Shown: positions 29,296-36,936, numbered from the stretch's first letter. The stretch is DNA of 64,000 nucleotides from Entomortierella parvispora E1425 (GCA_020891255.1 BQFW01000012.1:1550001-1614000); one strand, 5' to 3'. The notes: a model not told the origin generated them from the letters alone. Numbers and translations: made by a program.

Positions 29296-30777
29296 TTAGT
29301 GGATGGCGTTGTTGACATTGCCAGCGACATTATGGGCTCCAGTGCTGACAGCGTTGGCAGCGTTGTGGGCACCGGTGTTGATGGTGTTGGCGGCGTTGCC
29401 AAGACCGCTACCGGTCGAGTTCACGGTGCCGTAGGCTCCGCTGTTGACGTTCGAGGCAGCGTTGTGGACATTGCTGATGGTAGAGTCAACGACACCGGGG
29501 CCACGAGGCTGGGTGTTGTAGCCGGAGGTGGTGGTGGTGTTATAGCTGGTGGCCATAGTGGGGTTATGGACACCAGCAGTGTTCACACCAACAGCGGGGG
29601 CCGTGGTGGTGTGGTAGGCGTTGCCAGCAGGGACCGAGGACGAGGCAACGACGGGGGCGCCAGTGTTATAGGCGGTGGTGGTGGCACCGGTGGGGACAGA
29701 CTTGACAACGACGGGCTCGATCTTCTCAGTCACGACAGTGCGGGTAGGGCCGCGGTTATCATAGTTGGCGGCCGAGCTGTTGTAGACGGTGGTGTGCTCG
29801 CCACGCTTTCTTCTCCAGCACCAGCCCAAGAGACCGGCCAAGGCGGTGGCGGCCAAGCATCCCAAAACGATACCGGCGATGGAACCGCCAGAGATATGGT
29901 TACTCTGCGTCGTCACGAAGGGGGTCCCGGTGGGAGAGGTGATGGGGGCGGCAGTGCGGGTGCCACTGACACGACGCGTCGACGTGCCGCGGATGATGCC
30001 GGGTGTGCCAGAGACCCAGGTGGTGGTACCGGGCAAGATGGCAGTGCCACCAACAATAGCCGTGGCACTGACGATGCGGGTGGTGCCGCTGACAACAGCG
30101 GTCTGGCCTCCGTAGTAGGTGGTACCGTTGTAAATACGGGTAACAACGCTGCCGCCACCGGCAGGCGAGGAAGGCGAGAAGGTTTGGGTACCCTGGCCGG
30201 GCCGGTACTGGTAAGGGTTACCAAAAGGGTTGGTCAAACCAGCCATGCCGCAGCGACGAAGGAGACCCTCGACGTTGACAGAGTTCTACATTCATATTTG
30301 GGTGAGGAAGAGAGTGAGTAGACTGGCTTTTTCAATGTGCATCGACATTGCCTAGATGATGAGTCCGAGCCAATCACAGACATGGCAGACAGGCAAGACA
30401 AGGCTCAATTGCTCCGCGTTATCTTTTACCTCATAGAACTGGGTAGAGCTGCGACGGCATTGGCAGGCAGCGTAGTTGTTAATGTAAGTCTGGTTGCACT
30501 GCTTGGCATTGCACTGCTGGACGTTGACATTAGGGTTGCTGCAGGTCACTAAAATGTCACATCATTGTCAAAAAGTTGGTAAGATTGTGCGATTCCAATT
30601 CCAATGCCCAATCTCAATTGCTCAACGTCATAAAAAGAAAAAAAAAGGGTTTGTAAGCTTACAAGGGTAGACGTTGATGGCGCGGCACGCCTGGTTGACA
30701 GCAGAGGTGTCGGGGCACTGGTAAGCAGAGGCAGTTGAGGCAACTGCCACGGCGGCGAGGATGAAGGTGGCCTTCAT
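29296..30777 (-). CDS. Type I membrane protein: signal peptide, 8-Cys extracellular domain, S/T/G-rich stalk, one TM helix, low-complexity tail (407 aa)
   Basis: Exons 30777-30663, 30548-30430, 30285-29296, phase-consistent GT-AG. Signal MKATFILAAVAVASTASA; Cys at residues 21, 31, 41, 51, 56, 67, 69, 90; TM ISGGSIAGIVLGCLAATALAGLLGWCW followed by RRKR. Confidence 0.88.
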
Positions 30778-31503: not shown

Positions 31504-31737
31504 TCAAAGGACATGTACGTTTTGGACCTTGGCCTTGACGGGGACACAGACTTTGGTCTTGACATTGCTGACATTGACGAGACCACGCTTTCCGAGGGCC
31601 GCACTACCGCTATGGGGAGAGGCGTTTTGGGGCTTGATGTCAGCAGTAGCCTCCACAGAGGGCTCTACCACCTTGTGGGGCGCGGCTTGGACCAAGGCGA
31701 TGGCGGCCAGGACGACGAAAACGGCTGAAATCTTCAT
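31504..31737 (-). CDS. Small secreted prepro-peptide (77 aa); a Kex2 site would release the cationic Val-rich 26-mer GLVNVSNVKTKVCVPVKAKVQNVHVL
   Basis: Intronless ORF with signal peptide MKISAVFVVLAAIALVQA/AP, a pro-region ending ALGKR and a C-terminal peptide. It has a TATA box upstream, and its first 12 nt (ATGAAGATTTCA) are identical to the neighbouring repeat precursor. Confidence 0.82.
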   Translation of the reverse strand: MKISAVFVVLAAIALVQAAPHKVVEPSVEATADIKPQNASPHSGSAALGKRGLVNVSNVKTKVCVPVKAKVQNVHVL

Positions 31738-31848: not shown

Positions 31849-32632
31849 AGAACGCGGTGAGATTCAAAGACAGATTACACATCCACAGAGGTCGGGCTTG
31901 ACATGAAGCGGACCTCCTTCAGCTGGGTCATATTCGATTGCCATGCGACAGGCTCTTCCCCACCTCCTTGATTTTGTGCCTTGCAGGAGTGAAGGCTCTG
32001 AACCAACAAGAAGAAATGAATGGCTAACTAACATGGTCTTGTTTCTGGTAAGAAGAAGAACGAAAAGTACAAGGAGTCGCACATGTATTATTGAGGATGA
32101 AGTGTAGAATGGAATCATGTCCATCTCTGTCTCCGTTCCTCCGCCACTTTAAGGGAAGGTCGGGGCTCTTTCAAAGAGTTTTCTACCATTAATTTCGTGA
32201 GAGATGATTTCGAGCATTCTGGGGCGACGGTCAAGGTCATTGTTATGGGAAAGCCCAACCCGTTTTCCAATGCTAGGACACCTACGGGATTGGGCACACG
32301 ATCTATAACTTCTGCAACTTGAGTTCTGCAACTTGAGTTCTGCAAAAAAAAAAAAAAAAAATCGATTCGATCTTCGAGAGTTCGTGGTCCAATGGTGGAA
32401 GGTCGATGTTTACGCAAAATCGCATATTTAATTGTTTACTATGTGAAGATGTGTTTTTCTCTAGGTTCAGTAGATAATGGTTCTTATTATGTTCGGCACA
32501 ATGACTTTGACAGTGTGTAGATGTGTAGATGTGTAGATGATGTGAAGTTGCTCTTCGCTTGTGGAGTCCAGCTCTTGCGGGAGCAGACTGAGCAGACAAC
32601 TCAAATTCAAGAAGGCGGAAGATACGATCGAT

Positions 32633-33694
32633 TTAAAGGAAGAGGAAGCGCTTCTTGAGGTCCTCGTTATCCTCCTCTTCATCTTCATCGTCCTCCTCGC
32701 GCTTCTTGAGGTCCTCGTTGTCCTCCTCATCATCCTCATCGTCCTCCTCGCGCTTCTTGAGGTCCTCGTTGTCCTCCTCATCATCCTCATCATCCTCCTC
32801 GCGCTTCTTGAGGTCCTCGTTGTCCTCCTCATCATCCTCATCATCCTCCTCGCGCTTCTTGAGGTCCTCGTTGTCCTCCTCATCATCCTCATCATCCTCC
32901 TCGCGCTTCTTGAGGTCCTCGTTATCCTCCTCATCATCCTCATCATCCTCCTCGCGCTTCTTGAGGTCCTCGTTGTCCTCCTCATCATCCTCATCATCCT
33001 CCTCGCGCTTCTTGAGGTCCTCGTTGTCCTCCTCATCATCCTCATCATCCTCCTCGCGCTTCTTGAGGTCCTCGTTGTCCTCCTCATCATCCTCATCATC
33101 CTCCTCGCGCTTCTTGAGGTCCTCGTTGTCCTCCTCATCATCCTCATCATCCTCCTCGCGCTTCTTGAGGTCCTCGTTGTCCTCCTCATCATCCTCATCA
33201 TCCTCCTCGCGCTTCTTGAGGTCCTCGTTATCCTCCTCATCATCCTCATCGTCCTCCTCGCGCTTCTTGAGGTCCTCGTTGTCCTCCTCATCATCCTCAT
33301 CGTCCTCCTCGCGCTTCTTGAGGTCCTCGTTGTCCTCCTCATCATCCTCATCGTCCTCCTCGCGCTTCTTGAGGTCCTCGTTGTCCTCCTCATCATCCTC
33401 ATCGTCCTCCTCGCGCTTCTTGAGGTCCTCGTTGTCCTCCTCTTCATCCTCATCGTCCTCCTCGCGCTTCTTCATGACCTCCTTGCGGTCCTTCTTGCCC
33501 TCCTTCTTGGGCTCCTTCTTGTGACGCTTGATGAGCAGGGAGCGCTTCTGGGCCATGTTGTTGCGGTGGTGTTCACCTTGAGCCTTGGCGTTGGTGTGGC
33601 TCATGGCCTTGTTGTCCTGGTGGTGGGGGACAGGGGCGGCATGGACGACGAGCAAGGTCGCAGCGAGCGCAGAGAGAATGAGTGAAATCTTCAT
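32633..33694 (-). CDS. Secreted Kex2-processed repeat protein (KEP), 353 aa, with 16 copies of EEDDED(D/E)EEDNEDL-KKR and terminal FLFL
   Basis: ATG start and signal peptide MKISLILSALAATLLVVHA/AP. Dibasic sites AQKR, LIKR, MKKR and LKKR after every repeat. Composition: 77 aa leader + 16x17 aa + FLFL = 353 aa. TATA box upstream. Confidence 0.9.
   Translation of the reverse strand: MKISLILSALAATLLVVHAAPVPHHQDNKAMSHTNAKAQGEHHRNNMAQKRSLLIKRHKKEPKKEGKKDRKEVMKKREEDDEDEEEDNEDLKKREEDDEDDEEDNEDLKKREEDDEDDEEDNEDLKKREEDDEDDEEDNEDLKKREEDDEDDEEDNEDLKKREEDDEDDEEDNEDLKKREEDDEDDEEDNEDLKKREEDDEDDEEDNEDLKKREEDDEDDEEDNEDLKKREEDDEDDEEDNEDLKKREEDDEDDEEDNEDLKKREEDDEDDEEDNEDLKKREEDDEDDEEDNEDLKKREEDDEDDEEDNEDLKKREEDDEDDEEDNEDLKKREEDDEDEEEDNEDLKKRFLFL
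32648..33463. repeat. Coding minisatellite, 16 x 51 bp
   Basis: Plus-strand unit gcgcttcttgaggtcctcgtt(g/a)tcctcctc(a/t)tcatcctcatc(a/g)tcctcctc; 816 bp is exactly 16 units. Confidence 0.97.
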
Positions 33695-33814
33695 GTTGTG
33701 TAAATGTGTGATGTGGTAGGTGAGAAACGGATATGAATGTCGATGTCGATGAGAGAGAAAAAGAAAAGAGAGGAGAAAAAAAAAAAGAGAAGAGGGAGCA
33801 CGAATGGCCTTGCA

Positions 33815-33820
33815 TTTATA
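33815..33820 (-). promoter_or_regulatory. Putative TATA box (TATAAA) of the KEP gene
   Basis: About 120 bp upstream of ATG 33694, followed by a CT-rich leader. Confidence 0.55.
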
Positions 33821-35754
33821 CCCTCCAGAGCCGGGGTGGTTCCCAAAAAGAACCCATTAGGACCTCCTTGACCCCCCAACCTGTCTTTGTCCTGGTCGAC
33901 CTTTTCCCCCCCCTCCCCCACAGTCTCCAAGGCGATTAACTACAGCAACAAAAAAAATGGAAATAGACCCATTTGTTATCTCCTGTTCGAGTACCTGGCA
34001 AAAAAAAAAAAAAAAAAAAGGCTGGGACCAGCTGGGTTCCCTTGAGCCCTGATCCTCCTTTCCTTCCTTCTTGCTGCAGCAACGAAAAGGAAGGGACAAA
34101 AGACTACGGAAATCATCAGGACCATGTATGACCTCCTTGAAAACGAAGAGAAAAAAAATAGTATATATAGCAGAAAAAAGGAACCGTAGGCATGCCCCAT
34201 GCAGACTCAATTGAACTGGAAAGACGTGAATGCAGTAAAAGATGAGTGCAAAGAATACAAAGGTCCCAAGTCAGTCGCCTCAGAAGGGGTCAGTTGCAGA
34301 AAGATGAGGAAGGGTGAAGGGAGATGAAGGAGGTTGGGGGGGAGGAGAAGGAGAGGGAGAGAGGAGGCAGGGAGCAAACTTGGAATAATTTTTTACGAGC
34401 TAGTGTCGCGTCAAGGGATCCCGGGGTCCAGGGAACACAGGAATTTCCTCTCGATAGTGGTACTGACGTGTCGCGGAAGCTTCAACAGCGAACATTGCCA
34501 TATTGCCTCTTTTTTGCCTGATGCCATAGTCCTGGGTTGAGCATTGCGTTATATCAATCCGCCGAATGAAAGAGGCGAAGGGATGGAGAGAGGCCAATAG
34601 GCCACATAACTAGAATCCAATAGGTACGAACAGACCAGTGTATCGGAATAGGCAAAATCGTCCCCTTGACCAAAGCGAAAAAGAGAAAAAGAGATGGGTG
34701 CCAGACAGGAGTCAGGAGGAAGACCGTCATGTCCATCCAAACAAGGTCGCCTTCGACATGCTCGAGATCTGCCATCAGCGATTTGCTGGAAGTATGGTAC
34801 TTGTGGCGCGCTCTCCTCCTCTCCTTCTCCCCCCTCTCTCGCTGCCTTCCTCTCCTATCCCCCCCTTTATTTCGCTACAACGACCTTTGTTGGTGTGCGA
34901 CAGCTTTGACTCCTTTATTCGCATGGTGCTACTCTATGCCATCCCTTCCTTTCCCCAAAGCCAGAAACAAATTCAAGGAGAGCTGCCGCGAACTGCAGCC
35001 CAATCCTGCAGCAATTGACACACCACCGATTTTTTTTTGTCTTGTTCAAAAGTACTGTATGTCTATCTTTCCGCACTCCCTGGCTGATTTTCTTTTTGGC
35101 ATCCAAATGTCGCAACGCGCACCTGGAGCTGAGGAGGGATTGAGGAAGAGGGTGAAAGGGAGGGGCCAGGGAGGGGAGAACGAGGAGAATTCCGAGGGGA
35201 GACTCTGCCGATAGAAGAGAAAAGAGTCTGGTGCCTTACCAAGCACGGCACCAGCTCCTTAGCACGCAATCATCGGAGGGGGATAGAAAGGATAGGCTAT
35301 GCGTAGGACGCGCTATGAGCACAGAAGGCAAAACGCTAGATCATCTTCTTGACGCCCACTTTCCCCTCAAGGGCCGTTTTTTTTTCTATTGGCTTCTGAG
35401 GACTTATTGTACAGCGAGCCTCCTCCATGATGATTAATGAGTCGTTGTCGAAGCTTTTCCCCTCCAAATGGCCCGGTACCTGATTCACCTGCCACTGAAG
35501 CACGTTTCTAGTGTGCATGTCCAACTCATGATACAGCTACTAATGCACCTTGATCCACAGCAAGGGGAAATGAGAAGCGTAAGCCAGATCCCAGTAGATT
35601 CATTCAGACACGGAGGTTTGAGCTTATATTGCCATAGGCAGCTTCTTTAATTGCTATCAATTTTCAATTTGACAAGACACAGAACAGAGTTCCAAACCCT
35701 TGGACTACTGTCGCGTTCAATTTACAGGGCTTATTGGGTTTCGTTGGGGGTAGG

Positions 35755-36936
35755 TTACAAAAGGGTCTCGCCAAGTGCACATCGGACCAAAGAACAGCCA
35801 ATGGTGACAGTTTGGAAGACAGATTCGTCATCCTCCAAAGTAGGGTTCACCTCCATCAGGTCCATAGCGACCAGGCAACCCGTTTCATAAATGGCCTCAC
35901 AAATGTAGTGTCCCTCTCTGAACGTCAGTCCTCCGCGGACTGGGGTACCTGTCGAAGGCGCAACAGAGGGGTCCAGGGCATCGACGTCAAAGCTCAAATG
36001 GATCGGTCTTGATCTATTGGGGGAAACATGCTGGACAGCCATCTCGACCACCTTTGCGATTCCATACTTGTCGACCTCGTGCATCGAAAAGGCTTTGATC
36101 CCATGATCCCTCAGGATCTTCTTCTCCCCAGCATCGACATCCCGAAGTCCGATATAGACCAATCGATCTTTGGTCAGACAGGGTTTGACCCAGCTGAATT
36201 CCTTGACTTGTCCTGCGATTCCCAAAAGGAACGAAACGGGACAACCGTGGATGTTTCCACTATCGGTCGTCTCTGGAGTATTGATATCCTAGGTTTTTAT
36301 CGTGGGGGAGGGGAGGGATGGTTTGTTTGTTTGTTTGTTTGATTTTTTTTTTTTTTTTTTTTTTTTGGATCAGATAAACCGTGCGAACAATTTTTGTACT
36401 CGATTTGGGGTGGCACAGACAAATATTTCCACCTACCGCATGGGCGTCGATCCAAATCAAAGCCGCGTCGGGATGGACAGACATGGTGCCCGCGACTGTC
36501 CCCAAAGCAATTGAGTGATCGCCTCCCAAGGTCAAGGCCAAGGATCCTTCCCTCAGATGGGCCGCTACAGATCCTGCCACGGATTCAGTGACGGCAGAGA
36601 CATAGCGAGAGTTCAGGAGTTTGCCCACGGGCGGATCGGAGGCGGGTCGCAATTGAGTATAATCCCTGTGGCCATCAAACCTGACCTGCCAGTCCAGTTC
36701 CTTCAGCTGGTCCAAGAGCCCAAATTCAATCATCTTTAGAGGACCTCGGTCGACACCATCCCTTGGCTACGAATTTGAAGGGGGAAGAGATGGGCCAAAG
36801 GGCGTTTAGCAACCTACACTGTGGGGTCAAGGAGAACATGCTATCTATCGCCACTACTTGCCTGCCCTCCTGAGAAAGGCACAGGGATGACGCCTACAGA
36901 TCTTTTCTTGAGGAATTTCTGGTTGACCGACGACAT
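35755..36936 (-). CDS. CAR1: Arginase
   Basis: Exons 36936-36862, 36766-36437, 36288-35755. Motifs PFSGGQ|PRDGVDRGP, LTLGGDHSIALG, WIDAHA|DINTP, SGNIHGCP, IGLRDVD, HLSFDVDALDP and GGLTFREG. The first intron is GC-AG. Confidence 0.97.

Follow-up and report, generated by a model that had tools for sequence, protein, structure and literature searches.

The locus and its predicted precursor

The window, by which we refer to the whole 64-kb stretch with coordinates counted from its first letter, hosts on its minus strand an ORF that is largely occupied by a tandem array (Table 1). Tandem Repeats Finder placed the repeat at positions 32648-33472 (period 51 bp, 16.2 copies, 98% matches, score 1559). 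Translation resolved this array into exactly 16 units of 17 amino acids, a copy number that rests on one long-read assembly. Each unit represents an acidic 14-mer closed by KKR, and the reading frame is maintained throughout the 816 bp. The 14-mer reads EEDDEDDEEDNEDL in 14 of the 16 units, with the first and last unit carrying EEDDEDEEEDNEDL, in which Glu replaces Asp at position 7. Asp and Glu account for 12 out of 14 residues in every unit, giving the peptide EEDDEDDEEDNEDL a computed mass of 1709.55 Da and a charge of about -12 at pH 7. Only four sites vary among the units, all of them at codon position 3, with three of the changes being synonymous and one producing the Asp/Glu exchange. 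A previous sequence-only reading of this DNA had described 16 KKR-closed units with 12 of 14 acidic residues; number, closure, and composition were reproduced, and the assumed identity of all units had to be given up in view of the D7E exchange at both ends. That reading had also omitted the three Lys-Arg sites of the pro-region (AQKR, LIKR, MKKR) and the C-terminal FLFL.

Table 1. Features of the locus, with positions counted from the first letter of the window
Feature	Position	Strand	Description	Basis
Acidic-precursor ORF	32633-33694	minus	353 codons/aa, single and uninterrupted, one exon	ORF calling, translation
TATA box (TATAAAT)	33814..33820	minus	126 nt 5' of the ATG, followed by a leader of 76% pyrimidine	Present at all seven orthologous loci
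Signal peptide (predicted)	33638..33694	minus	Codons 1-19, MKISLILSALAATLLVVHA; likely cut after V-H-A	Hydropathy, (-3,-1) rule
Pro-region	33464..33637	minus	Codons 20-77, His/Lys-rich, KR sites AQKR, LIKR, MKKR	Translation
Array	32648..33463	minus	Codons 78-349, 16 units of 51-bp repeats	Tandem Repeats Finder, translation
C-terminus	32633..32647	minus	FLFL and stop codon	Translation
3' flank, probable 3' UTR	32427..32632	minus		Alignable with L009
77-aa ORF	31504-31737	minus	Predicted second small secreted prepropeptide: signal peptide, pro-region ending GKR, cationic 26-mer with one Cys	
316-aa ORF	29296-30246	minus	Ser/Thr/Gly/Asn-rich; one membrane-like segment, then a short basic motif	

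The N-terminus of the predicted protein displays the layout of a signal peptide, with Lys2 followed by a 15-residue hydrophobic core and V-H-A, reaching a Kyte-Doolittle 11-residue maximum of 2.53. After residue 25, no second hydrophobic segment was detected (19-residue Kyte-Doolittle maximum of -1.28). Layout, hydropathy, and conservation at seven loci agree with the signal peptide that had been proposed before. The predicted mature N-terminus opens with Ala-Pro-Val-Pro (residues 20-23), invariant in all seven orthologues and composed of two X-Pro dipeptides, the kind removed by Ste13-type dipeptidyl aminopeptidases. An in silico cut after every Lys-Arg (19 sites) generates 20 fragments, 16 of which are near-identical. 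In order, these are a 51-residue leader ending in AQKR, SLLIKR, a 20-residue basic piece ending in MKKR, the 16 units, and FLFL. The pro-region is predicted to yield a 30-mer, SLLI, and a basic peptide of 17 residues. Every unit opens with Glu-Glu-Asp-Asp after KKR, the unit junction being L-K-K-R↓E.

Long plus-strand ORFs over the array were discarded as mirror frames of the repeat, and a GPI anchor or ER retention was dismissed, the tail being just FLFL without HDEL or KKXX. No Pfam family matched the window protein, one orthologue, or the neighbour protein. The Atlas model of the window protein did not reach a confident fold (pLDDT 0.49), and the protein is taken as disordered. Candidate relatives in the ESM Atlas were likewise rejected, with the best feature match of 0.76 lying below a meaningful level and the structure matches consisting of long low-confidence helices. 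The flanks of the gene (32310-32345, 32514-32539, 32346-32362, 34000-34020) contain microsatellites (a 14-bp unit in 2.6 copies, an 8-bp unit in 3.2 copies) and long poly(A) runs.

Of the two ORFs found downstream, the 77-aa prepropeptide is conserved at the same position in the nearest relative, L009, with 65% identity and a nearly identical mature peptide. Its signal peptide agrees at 15 of 20 positions with that of the Linnemannia exigua orthologue of the acidic precursor, a hint that the two predicted precursors have a common or duplicated leader. The 316-aa ORF matched no Pfam family.

Orthologous loci within the Mortierellaceae

The gene is present as a single copy in the 38.9-Mb, 20-contig genome and has no paralogues therein. 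Searches, among them a profile search against 1.84 billion representatives, recovered six relatives, exclusively from Mortierellaceae or from metagenome and sequencing-run contigs. These are an ENA metagenome contig (P0001/L009), Gryganskiella cystojenkinii (P0002/L010), L. exigua (P0004/L014), L. zychae (P0005/L015), L. gamsii (P0008/L017), and a Logan sequencing-run contig (P0007/L016). An arginase gene precedes five of the six in the same arrangement as in the window (arginase at 35755-36733). The synteny of P0007 cannot be judged, since its contig spans only 3.4 kb. A RhoGEF was additionally called at the three Linnemannia loci, and L009 aligns to the window across the RhoGEF region. Based on this shared synteny, we consider the loci to be orthologous. 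The search across the family that the sequence-only reading had suggested thereby led to arginase-syntenic orthologues in Gryganskiella and three Linnemannia species.

L009 and the window align upstream over 5.9 kb at about 75% identity, and the alignment resumes downstream of the acidic region, which itself is not alignable at the DNA level. By blastn, L009 5766-5987 matched window 32662-32427 at 73% identity, which spans the 3' flank and the final 30 nt of the ORF. Signal peptide, TATA box, and Lys-Arg sites are common to all seven loci. The promoter architecture consists of TATAAAT or TATAAAA at -117 to -189 from the ATG, followed by a leader of 68-77% pyrimidine, at seven out of seven loci. 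Within the first 23 residues, L009 is identical to the window with four synonymous codon changes and no replacement, and Gryganskiella differs by nine synonymous and two non-synonymous changes. These ratios (4:0 and 9:2) point to purifying selection on the signal peptide. Judged by this comparative evidence, the window gene is a real, conserved gene.

In four of the six relatives the assembly is broken within the gene, either by a contig end (L010, L015, L017) or by an N gap (L014, 6320-6420). As short-read assemblies break or gap inside the repeat, the acidic-precursor family is under-annotated. The public protein models of the Gryganskiella orthologue and the three Linnemannia orthologues are hence partial or wrongly spliced. 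A metagenome scan returned 122 pattern stretches matching the alignment query, with no relative among them, and an exact-protein look-up of the window protein and the neighbour protein matched no contig. Two further candidates were rejected as relatives: P0003, a 1586-aa repeat protein, owing to a spurious match of 21 residues only, and P0006 (365 aa), whose resemblance to the window protein is limited to the leader and a brief SHTNAKA motif within its first ~70 residues. Beyond these, P0006 is of unrelated, apparently globular sequence. It matched neither a Pfam family nor the genome carrying the window, and the leader of the acidic precursor may have been reused in it.

Conserved boundaries and divergent acidic units

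The orthologues follow a common plan, in which two to three Lys-Arg sites in the pro-region precede a segment usually starting with His and Lys/His, followed by an acidic low-complexity tail. The arrangement KR-SLLI-KR-HKK is common to the window and Gryganskiella. Five of six orthologues have a His behind the Lys-Arg site that immediately precedes the acidic part; the window protein has it after LIKR, one site earlier, and the window lineage contains an additional MKKR between basic head and acidic tail. The acidic low-complexity units of the relatives comprise 47-61 residues, with tail sub-repeats of 8 residues in L009, 11 residues in the three Linnemannia species, 9 residues in P0007, and longer ones in Gryganskiella. 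The 14-mer sequence of the window was found in none of the six relatives, rendering the 16:1 design lineage-specific rather than conserved.

The acidic segment is closed by a DLKKR boundary at four of seven loci (window, L009, Gryganskiella, and L. zychae). Further acidic residues come after this boundary in Gryganskiella, up to the contig end. In L. zychae, a 61-residue unit restarts after DLKKR, its copies differing at 3 of 132 nt, all synonymous. Taken together, the differences between repeat copies in the window and in L. zychae amount to six synonymous and one conservative change. L009, the nearest relative, possesses just one acidic segment of 57 residues, flanked by IKKR and DLKKR and devoid of internal sites, and its C-terminus KKR-LFLL resembles the FLFL of the window. 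P0007 and L. exigua show no closing site, the L. exigua model spanning an N gap. With regard to the expectation that orthologues keep the dibasic sites, this was the case ahead of the acidic segment and for the closing DLKKR in three of them; it was not the case for internal sites in L009 or for a closing site in P0007. In a similar manner, the idea of sixteen 14-mers as the designed product retained its array and lost its conservation, and it is weakened by the orthologues carrying other acidic units.

From this pattern, acidic composition and cleavage sites both look selected. We read the 16-fold array as a recent, lineage-specific expansion of the terminal unit along with its DLKKR, and the family as one that repeatedly multiplies DLKKR-bounded units.

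Acidic sequences that evolve this freely resemble spacers, and the array could instead be a carrier or pro-domain that neutralises, solubilises, or escorts the cationic His/Lys-rich N-terminal pieces of the precursor, or the cationic 26-mer encoded by its neighbour, on their way through the secretory pathway before being discarded. The anionic propieces of many antimicrobial-peptide precursors neutralise or escort their cationic parts and are discarded thereafter. Along this line, the units of most orthologues combine a basic head of His/Lys with an acidic tail, the His after the unit-opening Lys-Arg is among the few conserved residues (His at P1' in 8 of 19 Lys-Arg sites), and the gene next to the precursor codes for a conserved cationic peptide preceded by GKR. 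However, a single basic head gives little reason for a 16:1 excess of "spacer", the acidic units are separated by KKR alone, so that they space nothing, and the basic head sequences are poorly conserved as well. We therefore regard a carrier function as unlikely.

The array could also be selectively neutral: the gene would be real, with the array being a recent minisatellite expansion of the last acidic unit or partly a long-read assembly miscount at a possibly weakly expressed or silent locus, and the 16:1 stoichiometry would be biologically meaningless. The 98% identity of the units at DNA level indicates a young array with little time under selection, every species differs in repeat type and number, the acidic region is unalignable with the closest relative even though the flanks are about 75% identical, and the assembly is presumably Nanopore-based. 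In addition, no RNA run was listed for the stretch, a mycelial RNA-seq library being published for the presumed species, so that expression in vegetative mycelium may be low. Against this stand the perfect frame over 816 bp, the restriction of the four variable sites to third codon positions with three of them synonymous, the multiplication of DLKKR-bounded units in L. zychae as well (3/3 differences synonymous), the resumption of acidic sequence after DLKKR in Gryganskiella, and a promoter architecture kept at all seven loci. A merely neutral array appears quite unlikely to us on this evidence.

Lys-Arg sites and the host kexin

The Lys-Arg pairs appear to be selected as Kex2 sites. They account for 19 of the 21 Arg residues of the window protein and typically for three out of four in the orthologues, where shuffling of the sequences leads to an expectation of 0.3-0.6. 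This enrichment over shuffles is significant in most orthologues (p about 0.001-0.01 per protein) and weaker in L009 and the short L. gamsii fragment. Taking the seven proteins together, 16 of the 19 non-redundant Lys-Arg sites have Leu, Ile, Val, or Met at P4 versus a background of 7.9% of the mature sequences, a statistic that overcounts independent events because the sites are partly orthologous across species. The remaining three sites carry Ala, Lys, and Gly at this position. The aliphatic P4 is retained although the flanks of the sites have diverged. Kex2 is described to require Arg at P1, to prefer Lys/Arg at P2 and an aliphatic or basic residue at P4, and to tolerate all but bulky residues at P1' (PMC3777899). 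The array junction, with Leu at P4, Lys at P2, Arg at P1, and Glu at P1', agrees with this published specificity.

The genome carrying the window (G000) encodes a kexin with a P_proprotein match of 98.5 bits and a Peptidase_S8 match on the same strand (C4:2518284-2521541), the subtilase domain preceding the P domain. P-domain matches fall into two sets on one strand, separated by 4 kb (C4:2515437-2515785 and C4:2519784-2520041), which suggests tandem kexin paralogues; the second set contains stop codons, possibly introns. Moreover, several S10 carboxypeptidases are encoded, the family to which Kex1 belongs. The Kex2-type dibasic architecture that had been proposed beforehand is in line with the enrichment of Lys-Arg, the aliphatic P4, and the presence of a kexin gene.

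The least probable of the alternatives is a largely uncut, secreted or wall-bound, disordered block-charged polyampholyte with KKR as charge pattern instead of cleavage site, suggested roles being a hydrated coat or a counter-ion for cationic wall polymers: it would suit a protein of pLDDT 0.49 and no Pfam match, the highly charged repeats that KEP pipelines can yield as false positives, and the long acidic segments without cuts in some orthologues, but the Lys-Arg sites are accessible within a disordered chain and conform to the extended Kex2 consensus (aliphatic P4 at 16/19), Arg is nearly confined to them (19/21 in the window protein, three quarters in most orthologues), and the genome has a kexin.

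Comparison with KEX2-processed repeat proteins and other systems

KEX2-processed repeat proteins (KEPs) have been delimited by a signal peptide, the lack of a membrane segment, and repeats covering at least 15% of the length, together with at least four fragments between KR/RR sites, at least three of them similar (Le Marquer et al. 2019, PMC6339444). The window protein has a predicted signal peptide, assigned by hydropathy and sequence rules and conserved at seven loci, and no transmembrane segment past it according to Kyte-Doolittle analysis. It comprises 20 fragments with 16 near-identical ones, and its repeats cover 16 x 14 = 224 of 353 residues (63%, or 77% including KKR). The host possesses a Kex2-type protease. 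Since all of these sequence features coincide with the definition of Le Marquer et al., we class the protein as a KEP. Most likely, it constitutes a new KEP with an unusual cargo, belonging to a family found so far only in Mortierellaceae. KEPs as such are known from Mucoromycota, with 357 in 38 strains and eight in Mortierella verticillata (Umemura 2020, PMC7329392). Hyperacidic cores are unmentioned in the main text of both surveys, an absence of mention and not a proof of novelty, and the accessible part of the survey supplements contains no matching acidic-core motifs.

With MFalpha1, Ustilago maydis Rep1, and the surveyed KEP classes, the window protein has in common the signal peptide, the lack of a membrane segment, near-identical tandem units that fill most of the protein, and a dibasic Lys-Arg site with aliphatic P4 closing these units; the expected route via Golgi kexin and subsequent Kex1 trimming would be the same. 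In contrast to them, its core is almost pure Asp/Glu with one Leu and otherwise no aromatic or hydrophobic character, its units lack a Ste13 (X-Ala/X-Pro) spacer after the cut, and its family varies in core sequence between species, while keeping boundaries and composition. An alpha-factor-type pheromone precursor was rejected on this basis, with no Ste13-type X-Ala/X-Pro following KKR and the units starting with Glu-Glu-Asp-Asp.

Many short cores between Kex2 sites are likewise characteristic for the precursors of dikaritin RiPPs, such as ustiloxin UstA, phomopsin, and asperipin. The core peptide of the window is devoid of Tyr. No tailoring genes were found nearby, the neighbours being an arginase upstream and, downstream, the gene of the 77-aa prepropeptide and a membrane protein of no assigned class. 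UstYa/DUF3328 (PF11807) had no match in the whole genome, in a search that matched no control genome either. The RiPP reading was rejected accordingly, in the absence of both a UstYa match and a core Tyr to cyclise; this is in agreement with the initial statement that DUF3328/tyrosinase-type tailoring is missing from the surroundings of the gene.

Short anionic peptides are found outside fungi. The ovine surfactant-associated anionic peptides comprise an Asp-only heptamer and two analogues, whose activity depends on bound Zn(II), showing that acidic peptides of this sort can be bioactive (PMC8267837). The likeness to the window 14-mer, i.e., short, secreted, and composed almost entirely of acidic residues, is an analogy on the level of composition only, as the ovine peptides are mammalian, seven residues long, and have no known tandem Kex2-type precursor. 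Granins (chromogranins and secretogranins) are acidic, disordered proteins of the secretory pathway with dibasic sites, located in animal secretory granules. They act as low-affinity, high-capacity Ca2+ binders and are cut into peptides by proprotein convertases. They have no sequence relationship to the window protein and are not tandem arrays, and regulated dense-core granules are not known from fungi.

Proposed processing and role

The interpretation of the architecture as a secretory KEP precursor is well supported, and the protein is most likely cut into sixteen almost purely acidic 14-residue peptides. According to the sequence, the pre-protein would enter the ER, where signal peptidase would cut after V-H-A. 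A late-Golgi kexin would then cut after each of the 19 Lys-Arg sites, 16 of them reading L-K-K-R↓E, and a Kex1-type carboxypeptidase would remove Arg, Lys, and Lys from the basic tail. Each molecule would thereby give rise to EEDDEDDEEDNEDL in 14 copies and the D7E variant in two, besides FLFL and a small number of His/Lys-rich pieces, so that about 16 free 14-mers would leave the cell along with a few basic pieces. In other fungi, KEP peptides including partly trimmed forms were detected by mass spectrometry, and those of Coprinopsis occur with and without residual Lys (PMC9769878), making incomplete Kex1-type trimming plausible here.

Outside the hypha, the payload would most likely work by its negative charge in bulk, and it may bind di- or trivalent cations or other polycations. 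A charge-based extracellular role of this kind is favoured by the fact that the orthologues keep acidity and boundaries and not sequence. A receptor-ligand role is disfavoured for the same reason, given that the peptide sequence is not kept by selection. Our confidence in cation or polycation binding is low, as it is deduced from composition and conservation, and the binding of metals or minerals by the acidic peptide is speculative. The explanation as a whole, a KEP precursor that is kexin-cut and Kex1-trimmed and whose payload acts by bulk negative charge, appears to us somewhat more probable than improbable.

A broader version of this explanation extends to the family. The Mortierellaceae precursors might represent a fast-evolving secreted polyanion that is selected for composition, yielding in the present case 16 peptides per transcript and acting by bulk charge. 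Such a polyanion could chelate or buffer Ca, Zn, Fe, and Al, steer the dissolution or nucleation of minerals, or neutralise polycations such as chitosan or cationic peptides. We put this forward as a tentative and rather doubtful possibility. If true, this payload would be the first among KEPs to work physico-chemically instead of serving as a ligand, toxin, or amyloid.

Implications

To our knowledge, KEPs are widespread in fungi, with almost none having a known role beyond pheromones, repellents, and toxins, and those of early-diverging fungi are nearly unexplored. The locus offers a clean, testable case in this respect: one exon, a peptide of known mass, and orthologues that keep boundaries and acidity and leave the sequence free. 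It also illustrates how a KEP array can arise, with the last unit and its cleavage site being amplified jointly. Should the peptides be made, they would demonstrate that small polyanions can be produced by fungi along the Kex2 repeat-precursor route, which would be relevant to metal and phosphate mobilisation, the field in which the Mortierellaceae, as soil fungi, are of agronomic interest.
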